Assembly: GCF_009834535.1 (NCBI RefSeq)
Contig: NC_045702.1
Location: 74,152,001-74,216,000 of the forward strand
DNA length: 64,000 nt
Source: Camelus ferus
Taxonomy: Eukaryota
Direction of reading: 5' to 3'
The position numbers and the translations under genes were made by a program. The notes below the pieces were generated by a model that did not search any database, was not told where the DNA came from, and saw only the letters and a program-made list of their open reading frames with translations. The first letter of the stretch is position 1; every line of letters begins with the position of its first letter. This document shows, one piece after another, positions 4,411 through 51,050 of this stretch.

Positions 4411-6285
4411 ATTAAGTAATGATAAAAGAGTGATGGGAGAGTTCTCAAATTTTTTAACCCATTGGCTTATTCTAAGAATACAATATGCCTTTGCTTAGGA
4501 ACAAAATAGTTTATTTTTATACTTCCTGATTTTTTTTCTATTTGTGTGTGTGTTTATTTCTGTGTAAAATGATGTTTTTATGTACTTCATTTTTTTTTTC
4601 TCCTTTGATACCCACTTTGCCTTACCCTCATTTTTTTTCTTCTCCCCTTAGTGCCTCTAGCAGTTGGCTCTGCAGACAATCGTTTCCTATTAACTATTCC
4701 TGACTCTGCTTGGGAGCTCTTCCCTGACTCCTGTGTATTTGTATGCTAGTAGGAAGTGTTCCCCAGGGCAAGTTTGAGCAGTAGATCTCTTCACTGCCCT
4801 CTCCACTCAGACAAGACCCACCAGGGAGGCTGAGGCATGCTGCTGGGATTTGCCCTGGGCTCAGGAGGGTTTGGTACTGGGTTTGGTTTGGCCAGTTCCC
4901 CCCCTTCCCCCATCACTAATCGGTACCTTCCAGTTCACGGGACAGCTGGCCCTGAGAGCTCTTGTTTGTTTCCCCATCTCTGCTTACATAATACCCCTCA
5001 CTATAAGTTACTGCCTTTGACCTACTTCTACCCAATTCCCAGCTTCATTACGTTGCAGTGAATGAATCTGGTTGCCATGGCACATCCCCTACATTTCCCC
5101 CCTCCCCGGCCCCACTTATGTGACAGTTCTTGCAGCTTACCTGATAGCAGGTGGTTCTGAGCACCCTCTACCTGAATCTCACGCTACCTTTTGAAGGCAT
5201 GCTTGCTGTCAGACTTTCCTCAAGGCCCAGGGGACCCATGTCTACTCTGACCACATTTGCTTCCATCCTGCTTGGAAGATGACTGCCCTGATAAGGAGTC
5301 TGGAGAGGGAAGGGCAAAATGAAACTGAATGAGCGCTTTCCTTCTGCTCTCTCTGAAAAGAAGTTTAGAGTGAAGTGGAGCACTTTACATGTTTAGTCTA
5401 TGAACACCGGGTTTAACTGGTTTGCAGCAGTTTATCACCTGAAAGACAAAAGGCTTCTTGATTTTAATAGAATGGTTTCCAAAAGAATTCTTAAAAGTGA
5501 ATCAAAATATGTATTGAAACAAGTTCCTCACCTTAAAAGAAATGTCATCAAGAATGACCTTCCAAAGAATGATTTTATCCCCTCCACAGGAAGCCATGTA
5601 AGGATTTTTTGAAAAAAAAAAAAAAAAGAAAGAAAAGAAAAGGAATAATACCTTACTTGAATATCAAGATAAAAGTTGAATGAGCATGCCACCAATGGAG
5701 AAATGGAGTGTTTTTATTAAAGTATTTTTTAAGCCAGACATCTTTAGCTTCATTTTCCAAAGTAAGGAAGCCTTTAAATTTAATCATTTGTGTAGCGATT
5801 TTTAACTTTCTGACCCAGAGACTCGGAAGGAGAAAGACTTCAAGTCCTTCCCCACCAGGAGCCACTCCACGTGAGGGCGTTGCTGCCTGGGTCTGTCGGG
5901 GTCTAGAGATCCCTGAGCAACTGGGGAAAGAGCAGTTGACACCTGGGCTGTTCTCCACTCAGAGACGTGTTCACTTAAGGATGCTGCTTCTCTCACACAC
6001 TTAAAAAATGTTTAAAAATACTGTTTTAATTGGGCAGAGCATGAGTATAATGCTTATTAAAGCACAAAAAACACCTTTTTTTCCTTGACCCTCCCAGTAC
6101 AGAGAGCCGCCATCACTTCAATAAAAAGCTTTCTTAAAGATCCAAAGTATCAACAGAATCACAGTGTGAGCTTGCAAGTTTTAAAAATTAGAATTGTTGC
6201 TCTGACAGCAATGTAGCACTACCAGAAATGTCAGTTAGTTATGTGGGAAATATTAATTGACTTTCCACAGTTTCGTTTGTACCTA

Positions 6286-19344: not shown

Positions 19345-19485
19345 NNNNNNNNNNNNNNNNNNNNNNNNNNNNNNNNNNNNNNNNNNNNNNNNNNNNNNNN
19401 NNNNNNNNNNNNNNNNNNNNNNNNNNNNNNNNNNNNNNNNNNNNNNNNNNNNNNNNNNNNNNNNNNNNNNNNNNNNNNNNNNNNT
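19345..19485. other. Assembly gap (141 N) in GSAP intron 23/24 region
   Basis: Run of n; right flank is C-rich (G4-prone on minus). Confidence 0.99.
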
Positions 19486-46885: not shown

Positions 46886-46969
46886 CTGTGAAAATACAAG
46901 TGTTTTTTGAAGCATGTGAAGTATCTGTTACTTCCCCCTAACTAGGTAAATCCTCACGTGATTCTTTAC

Positions 46970-47058
46970 CTCCTATGAATTTCACGTTTTTTCTTCCTGT
47001 GTATCCTGATTTCAAGATCCTTGGCTTTGATCTCCTTAACAATGTTGGTATATTTTTG
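46970..47058 (-). CDS. CCDC146: CCDC146 exon (~12), [29 protein letters not shown]
   Basis: tttcag|CAA...AGG AG|gtaaag; 89 nt. Confidence 0.95.
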
Positions 47059-48597
47059 CTGAAATATAAAAATTACGTGTGAAATTAAAAAACAGAGCCC
47101 ACCAATGGCAACATATGGATACTTCCAGGCTCACCTCGTTCCTGGCAATCAAGTCAATCTCGGCCAGCTGGGTTGTGAAGCGCGCGGAGGGGCGGGGAGG
47201 AGCCGAAAACTGCCTGACCAGCCGACCTGAATCACACTGACTAGGACCAAAGGTTACTTAAAGAAGAGAAAGAGCAAGAGAGGAGGCACAGGAAGGAGCC
47301 TGCCCAGGGTGGCTGAGGAAAACTTGAGGGAACTTCTGAGGAGCCGAGCCATGACTGTGGCGGCTGGGCTGGGTGAGCGAGAGATTTGTGGCGGATAGAT
47401 GAGGGACGGGGGTGGTAGTCTAGTTTTCATAAATGTTATGAACTGACGCCTCTGTGGCATTTTGTGAGAGACTGAAGCCGTGCTTTTTAAAACGCTTTTC
47501 CATTCTTTTGTGTGGTGGGTGTGTTTTCCTACCACACAATGAAGTGCCGGGCTGAGAGACCAGCCACGGGGAGACGTTACGCAGGTTACACACGAATATT
47601 TAAAAAAGATAGCAGTTATATTTCTGAAGTCCTCAAAATATACCAAGTGCTAAAGACACTAGTTATGTTCTTAAATACAGAGACACTGGGTCCTTCATCC
47701 AGGGTGAGAAACGTATTCAAAGGTGAAGTACAGTATTTTGTTAGTAGAAACCGGAGGAAATCGTTTCTGTCGGCCTTTTCATGAGAGCAAAACTCACACT
47801 GCATGAGCGATTCAAAAGAACCTAGGCCTCAGGGCCAAGGTTGACTGTAGCAATTTTATGTTGTTCTCGGTGAGAAGAGGAGTTGGGAAGAAACTGATAT
47901 TATATAGGTAACTATGTGTATGAAGAATTAAAGAGACAGAAAAATATCTCGTCCATCCTGGGGGTGATAGCAACATTGATTTTTTTCCTCCTTCACTTTT
48001 TGTCTTTCCTTGGAGATGTAGATGAGAGGTGAAAATAAGTAAGACTGACAACAGAAACTATAGTTTGTTAAAGCTAATGTTTAACAGACGGTTCCCAAGG
48101 CTAAAAATACTTAAGGACAATATTTTTCATTTATCGACTTCCGTATTTCAAGAGAAAAAACTTTGAGATCAATTAAAGAACTGAATTAGCTCATTTAATA
48201 ATGAGGTTTGGCTAATGCAGATGAGCCACACAGAGATACACATGTATCAGTGTTTTAGGTTAATTTAAAGATAAAACAGGGCCATGTTCCTTGTAATAAG
48301 CCCTCTGCCCTTCCCTCTCCTCGTTTTGCTCCTGTTCCCTCAGGCCACCCTCATTCTCTGTTCCTCCTTGGCTACTGTCTTTCCTTTATTTACTGGAACC
48401 CAGCTACCCCATGAACTCTACTGGGCTTTGCGGCAGTTTCTGGGACCAGGGTCCAAACTGCTCAACAGGGATAAAGTGAACTTGACCACCTGACCTGTCC
48501 TGCGCTCTGGCTCACTATTTGACATGCTTTCCCCCATCTTCCAATGCCTCAACCACGCTAAACTTCTTTTAGATTTTGTGGAGGGGGGGTATTTTTG

Positions 48598-48984
48598 GGA
48601 AGGTTTGCAGGAGGGGCTTTAATTGCCAAGAACCCAATTAGAAGTCGGAGGTGCTGGTCAAGGGAAGGGAGCAGCCAGCCCGGGAGAGGCCGGGTGGGAG
48701 GAGTGCCCTTCGGCGCACTGGGCCGGGTGCGGTGCTGGACGAGTACTTTCGCTCGCTGGAGTGTCCGGCATCGTGGCACGTGCCAAAGTTGGTGTTAGTT
48801 ATGGAGCCCACGGTGGTCTTGTCCCCCTCACAGGTCAGGCCCCGCTCACAGGGACACGTGGAGTAAACCCCACGGAGCGGCCAGGCGGAGCCCTCGCCAT
48901 CCTCCCGGGCCTTGGGGCGCAGCGGGTCAGGCTCAGGCCGCCGTCACGGTGGCAGCAGTTGCTCTTGCACTGGGCACTGTTCAC
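48598..48984 (-). pseudogene. CLPS: Processed pseudogene of pancreatic colipase (CLPS), 5'-truncated
   Basis: VNSAQCKSNCCHRDGGLSLTRCAP/(1-nt deletion)/EDGEGSAWPLRGVYSTCPCERGLTCEGDKTTVGSITNTNFGTCHDAG; no intron at the recalled exon 2/3 junction; 3'UTR with ATTAAA (48618-48623) followed by gcccctcctgcaaaccttccc and AAAAA. Confidence 0.92.
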
Positions 48985-49023
48985 TGTTCCCCCCCTCCCC
49001 CCCCCACCAAGTGAAACCACGGT

Positions 49024-49735
49024 TTTTTTTGAGGCATAAGAGCGCATGTGTTTCTGTTACATAGGATGAGGATAACTTGAGGGTCCTGGTTTCTAAGTTA
49101 AGACTTTATGTTAGACACAGCTTCACTCATGGCTGCTTCTTGGGATACGAATTACAAAGGGAGCAAGACATGGCCGGGAAAGAAAATCATTACTGTTGCT
49201 GGGAAGTCGTAAAGAAAGGGAAGATCTTATTCAAATCATTGTGCACGTAACAGAGCCATGAGAACAGGAAGAGAGCGGTGTGGGAAGGACGGCCTAAGTT
49301 CCTGGTGTTGGCAGTGATGCTGGCCTCTCCTCCCACGGCAAGGACTTGCCCCTAAATGAAGGCAGTAGGGTCGATTTGGCAGTTCTGGCAGCAGTAACAA
49401 CTCCGAGCGTCCCAACCCCATTCCCAACCCCAGCTCCATCCCCCACTTTGACCTGAAGAACTCAGAGAAGAAGGGCAGGGTCTCTTGTCACGGACCCTGC
49501 TACTTGCTCAGTGAAGCTAGCCCAGTTTATGTTATGTTTTGAAAGGCCAGCACACTCGTGGGTGCTCAGGATGATGTGAAACTTATGGTACACATTAAAC
49601 CCTTCAGGATGGGGTCCGATTTCTCAGCCTGCAGGGGCATTTCTGTCATGAAGCCAAAAGCCCTATTGAAGTCTTTGAAATGGAACTGCTTGAAGATGGC
49701 ATCCTGGCCTTCCAGCTCATTCCACCCCCATCACA
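49024..49735 (-). pseudogene. PCBD1: Processed pseudogene of PCBD1 (pterin-4-alpha-carbinolamine dehydratase/DCoH), 5'-truncated, with 3'UTR and A8 tail
   Basis: Minus strand reads [35 protein letters not shown]/(fs)[35 protein letters not shown]; contiguous across recalled intron positions FNR|AFG and YNK|VHI; downstream resembles the PCBD1 3'UTR (gaccctgccctt..., ttagaaaccaggaccc). Confidence 0.92.
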
Positions 49736-50288
49736 GGAGGGTTGTTTTTGCTATTGGTTTCATTGCTGGTTTTGTTTGGGGATGTTGCACTGGGTCATCT
49801 CTGGTACTTTGTCGGGAACCCAGGAAAAAGTCATGGGCTGAAGCAGTACTAAAGGTAACGGTCCTACCATTGGTGTAAATGATGCTGGCTCGATGAGCTT
49901 GGAGAGTGGTCCCAAGTTGTGGCCCCTGTGTTGATCTGGGCCAATCACACTGGGATGTGAGACGCAGGAGAACACAGACACCTGTGCCTGTGGGGCGGCC
50001 AGCTCTGTCCCCTGGAGGTACCCGCCCCATTCTCACTGAAATTGCCATCTGTTCAAATCCTCTGCTTCTGGCCATTGATCTAGTTCTTTTTCCCTCTACA
50101 CTGTTGAGTTGCTAATTGAATCCTGGGACTGTTTTTCAGTGTGTGGTTGAGTCTTGTGTAGGGAAGCTGTATGGTCGCTGGCACTTGGGCAAGACTTAAA
50201 ATCATAGCTTTCTAGTGAACATTGTGTTAAAGTGAGGCTGCCCTGGGCTCCTGTAGGAATTAATGGATGATTAGAAAAATGCCATTAC

Positions 50289-50459
50289 CTGAGCTTTCAG
50301 GAAATCCTTGGACTTTTGCTCCTTCTCATCAATTTTGATTTGAGTCATACGGATGAGGTTGAATACCAGCTCTTGCATGTTTTCTTGCTCCTTTAAAAGC
50401 TTGTTTTCTTCTGCAAGTTGCTGTTCTACTAACTTCGACTCAGCTTCTGATAGGATTTT
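50289..50459 (-). CDS. CCDC146: CCDC146 exon (~11), [25 protein letters not shown]...DFLKAQ
   Basis: tcaaaag|AAA...CAG|gtaatg; 171 nt. Confidence 0.95.
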
Positions 50460-51050
50460 CTTTTGAAAAACACAAGTATTATAATGTGTTTATTTGAAGA
50501 AACACAGTAAGGCCAGTATCTCAGACTACTTTTAAAATTTTCTATGCAGTTTATTTTATTAAAACACAAAATAAAGTAACCCTGCTGCCTTAGTGCCAAG
50601 TATTTTCTTTATCTTATAAAAGAATGTGCAAACATGATAACACGTATAACATGATAGAACTTTTTCTTAATCAGATTATTTTCAAGTAACTTTTCAAAGA
50701 GAAATAAAAGCATGTGTTAAAATACTTTGAAAGAGACTTGAATAAACAAAATCTGAAGTTAGATGTTGTTAACATAAAACATTTATTGTTAATTTTTAAA
50801 TCAGTAGCCTTTTCACTTTAAAATCTCATGAATTTGTATGATTTTTGTTGGTTTAAACATATCCTTTTTTCCCTCCAAGTTTAATGTGCATTTGGGATGA
50901 ACTTTGAGATGAACAAACAGACCCACATTAAATAGGGTCATACTCTCTTTAATGACTCTCCTATTAATGAGATTTCGTGGAACACAGTTAAGAACATAAC
51001 TTCGTATTAATCACTCTTAGATAGAAGCTTAAGTGAAAGTTGATACTAAC

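Follow-up and report, generated by a model that had tools for sequence, protein, structure and literature searches.

Bipartite chimeric retrogenes of the Buzdin/Gogvadze type, for example U6-L1 and mRNA-L1, carry a full-length 5' part (PMC2104539). One target-site duplication (TSD) flanking a chimera is the accepted signature of a single insertion event (PMC2104539; bioRxiv 10.1101/2025.02.02.635956). RNA ligation is among the routes proposed for the U6/L1 chimeras (bioRxiv 10.1101/2025.02.02.635956), and in vitro ORF2p both adds nucleotides without a template and jumps between templates (PMC10830420). Here we describe a composite in a camel intron made of a copy of PCBD1 followed by a copy of CLPS (colipase), and our criteria for a chimera are those of the list of L1 template-switch bipartite chimeric retrogenes in PMC2104539. 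The composite shares with those chimeras two cellular transcripts in the same orientation, a 3' part that is 5'-truncated at an arbitrary internal site, and one direct repeat of 10-20 nt around the pair whose target begins with an A run. It differs from them in that its 5' part, PCBD1, is itself 5'-truncated instead of full length, that both of its parts are protein-coding mRNAs, and that the parts are separated by a 23-nt G-rich filler rather than joined directly, the A tail being gone. Chimeras of two protein-coding mRNAs are at the rare end of the known spectrum.

Three other systems should be kept in mind. As in the LINE-1/mRNA-fragment chimeras (bioRxiv 10.1101/2025.02.02.635956), a TSD in common and ages that match point to one event of target-primed reverse transcription (TPRT), and the candidate mechanisms are template switching or RNA ligation; the camel composite, however, contains no LINE-1 sequence. 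Each half looks like an ordinary L1 processed pseudogene in being spliced, in ending at a natural cleavage site after a poly(A) signal and in being decayed, but neither has a TSD or an A tail of its own, and the TSD encloses both. Retroelements also insert into the A tails of other retroelements, as Alu does into Alu tails, and the outer repeat is then kept. The camel composite resembles such nested insertions in its single orientation and its outer repeat, but it is without the A runs expected to flank the inner element.

As the two halves are of equal age and share one pair of insertion scars, joint insertion is their most likely origin. We believe that a single LINE-1 insertion event with template switching probably built the whole composite; the template switch itself is a part of this account that we infer.

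Make-up of the composite and its host intron

The window, by which we mean the whole stretch of 64,000 nucleotides of Camelus ferus DNA that was analyzed, carries the composite on its minus strand. A 5'-truncated intronless PCBD1 copy comes first and a 5'-truncated intronless CLPS copy follows, both in the sense of that strand and in the same transcriptional orientation (Table 1). The preliminary description of this DNA had named two intronless fragments on one strand, and this is borne out by Pfam, by the nearest solved structures and by exon joins without introns. Pterin_4a is matched on both PCBD1 pieces, and Colipase and Colipase_C on the CLPS pieces. The structure nearest to the PCBD1 translation is DCoH/PCBD1, from residue 24, and that nearest to the CLPS translation is colipase. 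We compared the PCBD1 exon joins with the whale, cow and camel genes and the CLPS joins with the pig, alpaca, whale and camel genes. Intron removal is precise at the PCBD1 exon 2/3 and 3/4 joins and at the CLPS exon 2/3 join, and the 3' ends of both copies are the points where the parent genomic sequence diverges, as processed pseudogenes require.

Table 1. Features of the composite and its surroundings, in the order of the minus strand (nt, nucleotides; TSD, target-site duplication)
Feature	Position in window	Strand	Description or basis
Candidate host-gene exon, nearest upstream coiled-coil open stretch	50274..50489	-	No family match
TSD, 5' copy	49736..49750	-	Sense C-A5-C-AA-CCC-T-CC; ends where solid PCBD1 homology starts
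PCBD1 processed pseudogene	49007..49735	-	Aligned to humpback, wild camel and cow genes
Decayed PCBD1 polyadenylation signal	49024..49029	-	AATAAA to AAAAAA; aligned with the 3' ends of the whale, cow and camel genes
Junction filler	48984..49006	-	23 nt, G-rich; sense T-G9-A-G7-AACAG
CLPS (colipase) processed pseudogene	48597..48983	-	Protein match and parent-gene alignments
Intact CLPS polyadenylation signal, ATTAAA	48618..48623	-	
TSD, 3' copy	48580..48597	-	Sense (C)-A5-T-A-C7-T-CC
Candidate host-gene exon, nearest downstream coiled-coil open stretch	46969..47130	-	Open coiled-coil stretch

Both halves are decayed, with frameshifts and a lost stop, and the A tail is absent from both. The PCBD1 copy lacks exon 1 and codons 1-22; its start is 65 nt into exon 2, at about codon 23. 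Exons 2-3-4 are fused without introns and are followed by the complete 3'UTR up to the cleavage site; the sequence that follows directly downstream of that site and is common to the three parent genomes is missing from the copy. The reading frame is shifted and the stop codon is gone. The CLPS copy does not begin at an exon border but 19 nt into exon 2; it has exons 2-3 fused and runs through a long 3'UTR of the camelid type to the natural poly(A) site. It has one frameshift, its stop TGA has become CGA, and its composition is GC-rich (GC 0.65, CpG observed/expected 0.64).

The 3' ends of the halves need some care. An A8 tail had been claimed for PCBD1 (49023-49030), but this run aligns to the AATAAA of the whale, cow and camel genes with a T to A change, and the next ~16 nt are 3'UTR up to the cleavage site. 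PCBD1 is therefore without an A tail, and the 40-nt linker once thought to separate the halves shrinks to the filler in Table 1. We also reject a TSD around PCBD1 alone that uses the A8, since the run is a decayed signal and PCBD1 sequence extends past it. For CLPS, an ATTAAA signal followed by A5 had been reported. The signal stands, with the natural poly(A) site 21 nt past it and the A5 next, but that A5 belongs to the TSD: the A run after CLPS is only the A5 (48592-48596) of the 3' copy.

About nine coiled-coil-like open stretches on the minus strand flank the insert on either side, so the composite is sense to its host gene, as had been proposed. The preliminary description had proposed intron 11 of CCDC146 as the host; the sole Pfam family signal from these stretches is a sub-threshold match to CFAP58_CC; a PDB search gave no match to them and an atlas search gave generic coiled-coil neighbours only. 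An exact look-up for the locus in other assemblies, using a 138-aa antisense ORF across the junction, returned no record, and a search within the window for further copies of the insert flanks, as a proxy for the empty site, found none. The biological impact of the composite is probably nil because it is old, non-coding and intronic.

The target-site duplication and the age of the halves

The flanking repeats of the preliminary description are both present at exactly the positions it gave. Anchored at both junctions, the TSD scores 18 (P=0.0007 against random pairs), and P is 0.014 when both sides are forced to begin with A5. When the flanks are compared locally without junction anchoring P is 0.16, so that only the anchored test is significant. 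Given that test, the idea of a single bracketing L1-type TSD of 14-17 nt with its A run first holds up. So does the statement that neither half has a repeat of its own, as the best scores around the two halves are 6 and 4 over about 200 offsets each.

It is important to realize that a second insertion, into the A tail of the first copy, would leave the same outer repeat, and that a TSD enclosing both halves is therefore not enough to exclude it. Several observations count against a single event. The repeat copies are 15 and 18 nt long and differ by 3-4 nt in run length and by two substitutions. Where PCBD1 begins on its 5' side can be placed only to within about 15 nt, and in an ungapped alignment PCBD1 homology creeps into the 5' TSD copy with 8/11 positions matching. 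The truncated 5' part, the filler between the parts and the lack of any remaining A tail each count the same way. Compared with a target of the TT/AAAA type and an A tail, the A5 of the TSD is preceded by GC, not TT, and there is no A beyond the TSD's own A5.

The age of the halves can be addressed separately. Both are sister to the camelid parent at a similar relative depth (shared versus parent-only changes 16:44 and 9:14), having branched off its lineage well before alpaca and camel separated, and the composite most likely dates from roughly 40-60 million years ago, in the stem camelids. Equal non-CpG divergence, the age test that had been suggested for this locus, is what we find: private changes number 58/664 in PCBD1 and 28/312 in CLPS (Fisher P=0.90), or 0.0873 versus 0.0897 private non-CpG substitutions per site. 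The maximum likelihood private branches are 0.126 (0.098-0.162) for PCBD1 and 0.139 (0.087-0.197) for CLPS, a ratio of 1.11 with a 95% range of 0.64-1.75. Changes that are blind to GC bias (W-W plus S-S) give 10/554 versus 5/266. The resolution of this test is about 50%, therefore an insertion that followed the first by a few million years at most would be indistinguishable from a simultaneous one.

The CpG contrast between the halves is not a sign of an age difference. It had been read as differential retention, but the CLPS half has 26 CpG against 10-18 in the living parents. Eight CpG were gained, change is biased from AT to GC, and both the GC and the CpG of this half exceed those of every living parent gene. 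CpG is a poor proxy for age here because the CLPS half outgrew its parent in GC and CpG, yet diverged like its partner. The composite is a clean worked example of how the shortcut of dating by CpG content is flawed.

The filler between the halves

The filler matches neither parent mRNA, and the PCBD1 and CLPS parts are not directly joined. Taken together with the last two G of PCBD1 (to 49008), it yields two tandem 10-mers, GGTGGGGGGG and GGAGGGGGGG, which read as the 3' TSD core C7-T-CC in reverse complement (local match P about 0.009). The GAACAGT that comes after them is identical to the opening 7 nt of the CLPS part. The window has six G runs or C runs of 7 nt or more, and 3/6 are inside 48583-49005. 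Between the halves we saw no A run and no second L1-type target.

Two other sources of the filler were considered and rejected. In camelid, pig or whale sequence, neither the beginning of CLPS exon 2 nor the last bases of intron 1 align convincingly with the filler. An A tail turned to G by point mutation would have to have changed at 17/18 positions, and the local AT-to-GC rate, ~0.14 per site, falls far short of this; such a conversion would also need homogenisation driven by slippage, and we regard it as a minor possibility. We infer instead that the G-rich filler arose within the same insertion event, because two inverted copies of the 10-nt TSD core lie within it. A junction with inverted TSD-core copies in place of an A tail could inform models of how the L1 reverse transcriptase changes template.

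A single LINE-1 event and its rivals

The scenario we favor would have taken place in a stem camelid germline cell, where a single LINE-1 target-primed reverse transcription would have made the whole composite. The L1 endonuclease would have nicked the plus strand after a T5 run, the T residues would have served as primer where the A tail of a colipase mRNA begins, and copying would have proceeded back to 19 nt inside exon 2. The same nascent cDNA would then have continued on a PCBD1 mRNA, from its 3' end back to codon 23, and the cDNA would have been joined to the far side of the staggered break, probably by microhomology: the parent has CAAACCTGC at the place where the target has CAACCCTCC. 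The outcome would be one duplication of 14-17 nt enclosing both halves. Before taking up the PCBD1 RNA the enzyme may for a short time have used the single-stranded target overhang as its template, which would produce the filler.

This keeps the order of synthesis proposed in the preliminary description, CLPS first and PCBD1 second, and our analysis supports it. Other parts of that proposal have to be given up. The reverse transcriptase was said to have jumped to the tail of the PCBD1 mRNA, but no tail is present; the copy stops at the cleavage site and the G-rich filler comes next. Packaging of both RNAs in the same pancreatic cell cannot account for a heritable insertion. Both RNAs were needed in a germline or early embryonic cell.

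A more elaborate version, in which L1 changed template several times during one integration and the junction is the fossil of those jumps, is offered tentatively, and we consider it unlikely. The enzyme would have reached the end of a broken colipase RNA and copied 7 nt a second time; two rounds of copying would then have used as template the single-stranded overhang of the target site on the enzyme's own primer strand. Two inverted copies of the 10-nt TSD core would be the outcome, both with their end exactly at the border of the TSD, and the last jump would be made through a GG/CC overlap onto the tail-less end of the PCBD1 RNA. If true, it would be natural evidence for a jump to exposed genomic single-stranded DNA, which ORF2p structural and biochemical work has proposed as a normal insertion step.

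Two L1 insertions in quick succession are possible, though we doubt that this is what happened. PCBD1 would have inserted first and made the outer TSD, and CLPS would have followed into its long A tail in the same orientation; a second TSD inside an A tail is pure A and therefore invisible. This reproduces the outer TSD and the common orientation, and the equal ages are compatible with it within the ratio range above. The L1 endonuclease favors A-rich tails as targets, and independent retrocopies commonly lack their 5' ends, as both parts do here. However, A runs should then flank CLPS, and we find the G-rich filler on its 5' side and only the TSD's own A5 on its 3' side. Two insertions also give no reason for inverted copies of the outer TSD core at an internal junction, and they need two rare gene retrocopies in the same roughly 30-nt target within a short interval.

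We find it improbable that a chimeric PCBD1-CLPS RNA had formed beforehand, by ligation or aberrant trans-joining, and was retrotransposed once as a single template. The shared orientation, single TSD and equal age all fit such an RNA, and ligation has already been proposed for U6/L1 chimeras, but the join is off the splice sites, with the PCBD1 cleavage site meeting CLPS 19 nt inside exon 2, and the filler is left unexplained. Also against it, the 3'-OH end that CPSF cleavage leaves is not known to be a substrate of RtcB.

Two unrelated retrocopies of different age, adjacent by chance and with flanks alike by chance, which the preliminary description had raised as a caveat, would explain why the halves contrast so strongly in CpG and GC, but are very improbable given that private divergence is equal, that the CLPS half gained CpG rather than merely keeping it, that the anchored TSD is significant and that neither half has a TSD of its own.

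Whichever way it was inserted, the PCBD1 copy keeps ancestral camelid 3'UTR states that have since been lost from the living camel PCBD1 gene.

The two retrocopies

The 5' half of the composite, translated conceptually in shifting frames, encodes PCBD1/DCoH without its first 23 residues and is complete to the C-terminal end. Both of its pieces carry the Pterin_4a domain (Pfam), and the nearest solved structure is that of DCoH residues 24-61. The 3' half translates as colipase, matching both colipase Pfam domains and the pig colipase chains of solved structures. Comparison genes were retrieved via their proteins: PCBD1 of humpback whale (L002), wild Bactrian camel (L004) and cow (L007), and CLPS of pig (L001), alpaca (L003), pygmy sperm whale (L005) and wild camel (L006). 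BLAST and MAFFT comparison with these parent genes shows that PCBD1 exons 2, 3 and 4 are fused without introns, as are CLPS exons 2 and 3. The preliminary description called both halves 5'-truncated intronless retrocopies. They are indeed 5'-truncated processed pseudogenes, because the introns are gone, the copies start inside exon 2 (by 65 nt in PCBD1 and 19 nt in CLPS), frameshifts break both and both have lost the stop codon.

Coordinates of the composite, its flanks and its surroundings
Feature	Position	Strand	Remarks
5' copy of target-site duplication (TSD)	49736-49750
PCBD1 copy	49735-49007	minus
A8 run in PCBD1 copy	49023-49030
PCBD1 copy, signal to cleavage site	49007-49022
Filler	48984-49006	minus	23 nt
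CLPS copy	48983-48597	minus
CLPS-derived segment	48598-48989		392 nt, GC 0.65, CpG o/e 0.64; passes usual CpG-island thresholds
3' copy of TSD	48580-48597
Peak of AT-to-GC bias	49369-48860		spans the junction
Nine strongly coiled-coil open stretches	35436-62399	minus	near 62.3, 60.3, 59.4, 50.4, 47.0, 45.3, 43.4, 38.8 and 35.6 kb
N run	19345-19484		140 nt

The A8 run had been taken for the tail of the PCBD1 copy, but it aligns with the AATAAA signal of whale, cow and camel PCBD1, with T changed to A. The ~16 nt past it, previously counted in a 40-nt linker, align with the parental 3'UTR from signal to cleavage site, so that only the filler remains of that linker. The copy stops matching at exactly the point from which the whale, cow and camel genomes share downstream sequence, and therefore it ends at the natural cleavage site without an A tail. 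The wild camel gene itself (L004, 10575-10605) has had the ~16 nt between AATAAA and cleavage site rewritten. Whale, cow and retrocopy agree there, so the pseudogene keeps the ancestral camelid 3' end of PCBD1.

In the CLPS copy, the long 3'UTR is of the camelid-specific kind and amino-acid states are camelid too. The copy ends at the natural poly(A) site, 21 nt past an intact ATTAAA, and is followed by 5 A only. Since the same 5 A also open the upstream repeat, CLPS has no surviving tail beyond the duplication. The alpaca CLPS gene model (L003, 3001-11792) is 8.8 kb long, and its longer annotated isoforms (up to 151 aa) begin ~2.8 kb upstream of canonical exon 1 (5839-5922).

The flanking repeat and the filler

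Both copies of the outer repeat are present where they were first placed. Compared locally and without anchoring, the two flanks show no significant match (P=0.16). A TSD, however, has to close the upstream flank and open the downstream one, and a test anchored in this way gives the pair a score of 18, with P=0.0007 when random site pairs are the reference; P is again 0.0007 with the downstream side forced to start with A5, and 0.014 with both sides so forced. Around PCBD1 alone and CLPS alone, ~200 offset combinations each gave best scores of 6 and 4, in agreement with the earlier claim that neither half has a repeat of its own. The C run is 3 long in one copy and 7 in the other, and two further positions differ as well, a mismatch that is reasonable for an insertion so old. 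The 5' edge of PCBD1 is blurred, since an ungapped alignment gives 8 of 11 more parent-matching bases within the 5' repeat. We read this match as probable junction microhomology; the flanking repeat could instead be shorter than it appears.

The filler reads T, 9 G, A, 7 G, AACAG on the minus strand. Joined to the two G that end PCBD1, it forms two tandem 10-mers, GGTGGGGGGG and GGAGGGGGGG, both reverse-complementary to the 3' TSD core C7-T-CC (9/10 and 10/10 identical). Tested against random window pieces, the local match of filler to core has a P of about 0.009. The 64 kb hold only six runs of 7 or more G or C, and three of them lie within the 420 nt of 48583-49005. The inverted copies end precisely at the border of the TSD, and immediately before them a 7-nt piece of CLPS (GAACAGT) stands in tandem repeat.

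Age of the halves and origin of the composite

Each half is sister to its camelid parent in maximum-likelihood (ML) trees, a placement that in itself points to a camelid lineage and no more narrowly to camel. With changes polarised by two outgroups for each gene, private non-CpG substitutions number 58 at 664 sites in PCBD1 (0.0873) and 28 at 312 in CLPS (0.0897; Fisher P=0.90). Clearly unequal non-CpG divergence had been proposed as a refutation of the single insertion, and with the halves equal it fails. W-W plus S-S changes, which GC bias does not affect, are 10/554 and 5/266. The ML terminal branches are 0.126 (95% bootstrap range 0.098-0.162) for PCBD1 and 0.139 (0.087-0.197) for CLPS, a ratio of 1.11 (0.64-1.75). 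Shared versus parent-only changes on the camelid lineage are 16:44 for PCBD1 and 9:14 for CLPS, and the relative branching depth is similar. The CLPS copy is far older than the alpaca-camel split: in the CLPS tree the alpaca and camel tips measure 0.006-0.013 and the stem 0.072. At common mammalian neutral rates about 0.13 substitutions/site corresponds to roughly 40-60 million years, which puts the insertion at roughly that age, on the camelid stem.

We believe the composite probably arose in a single event of target-primed reverse transcription (TPRT) with a template switch. TPRT would have been primed on colipase RNA and switched onto the end of a PCBD1 RNA, and the far end would have been resolved through microhomology. 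We infer that the filler was produced in the course of this one event, possibly when the single-stranded overhang of the primer strand itself was copied. In vitro, L1 ORF2p shows non-templated addition and template jumping, and a jump onto exposed single-stranded genomic DNA during insertion has been proposed (PMC10830420). Same-orientation chimeras of cellular transcripts within one TSD are an established product of template switching (PMC2104539), and the current criterion for a single TPRT event is a shared TSD with matching age (bioRxiv 10.1101/2025.02.02.635956). The composite shares with published template-switch chimeras the same orientation of its parts, a 5'-truncated 3' part (CLPS) and a single flanking repeat. 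Unlike them, its 5' part (PCBD1) is not full-length and its parts are not directly joined. It therefore behaves like that class, but as an atypical member.

Our confidence in a single event is not higher because a freshly inserted PCBD1 retrocopy could have received a CLPS retrocopy in its A tail while that tail was still long, and this would yield an identical outer repeat and orientation, with ages that could not be told apart. However, such an insertion predicts A runs flanking CLPS on both sides, which are absent, and it does not explain why the inner junction holds inverted copies of the TSD; we consider it possible but rather unlikely. RNA ligation is an alternative route to such chimeras (bioRxiv 10.1101/2025.02.02.635956), and a PCBD1-CLPS RNA made before retrotransposition seems to us quite improbable. 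Pure coincidence of two retrocopies is harder still to credit. A heritable insertion cannot be accounted for by the suggested co-packaging of both RNAs in a pancreatic cell.

Base composition and host gene

The CpG contrast between the halves noted in the preliminary description is real (observed/expected 0.64 in CLPS vs 0.33 in PCBD1) but is not one of differential retention, as over the same region living parent genes range from 10 to 18 CpG and from 57 to 60% GC, and the CLPS copy reaches 26 CpG and 65% GC. The copy kept 12 of 17 ancestral CpG and newly gained 8. On the private branch of CLPS there are 16 AT-to-GC changes vs 7 GC-to-AT (implied equilibrium GC 0.76), and on that of PCBD1 24 vs 29 (0.44). 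Within the peak of the AT-to-GC bias the ratio is 21:9, vs 19:27 outside. The CLPS bias could stem from biased gene conversion or from long-term hypomethylation in the germline. Since the birth of the retrocopy the camel CLPS parent has had 13 GC-to-AT changes vs 1 the opposite way. The alpaca parent, with 9 vs 1, is like camel and opposite to the pseudogene.

On either side of the insert the minus strand carries open stretches of coiled-coil composition, and the insert is therefore intronic and sense to its host, as had been proposed. Searches with these stretches gave no confirmation of the proposed host name CCDC146 or of the intron number 11. The nine strongly coiled-coil stretches are presumably exons of the host gene. 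One of them has a family match, a weak one to CFAP58_CC (E=6e-6, below cut-off). The N run is the sole one in the window.
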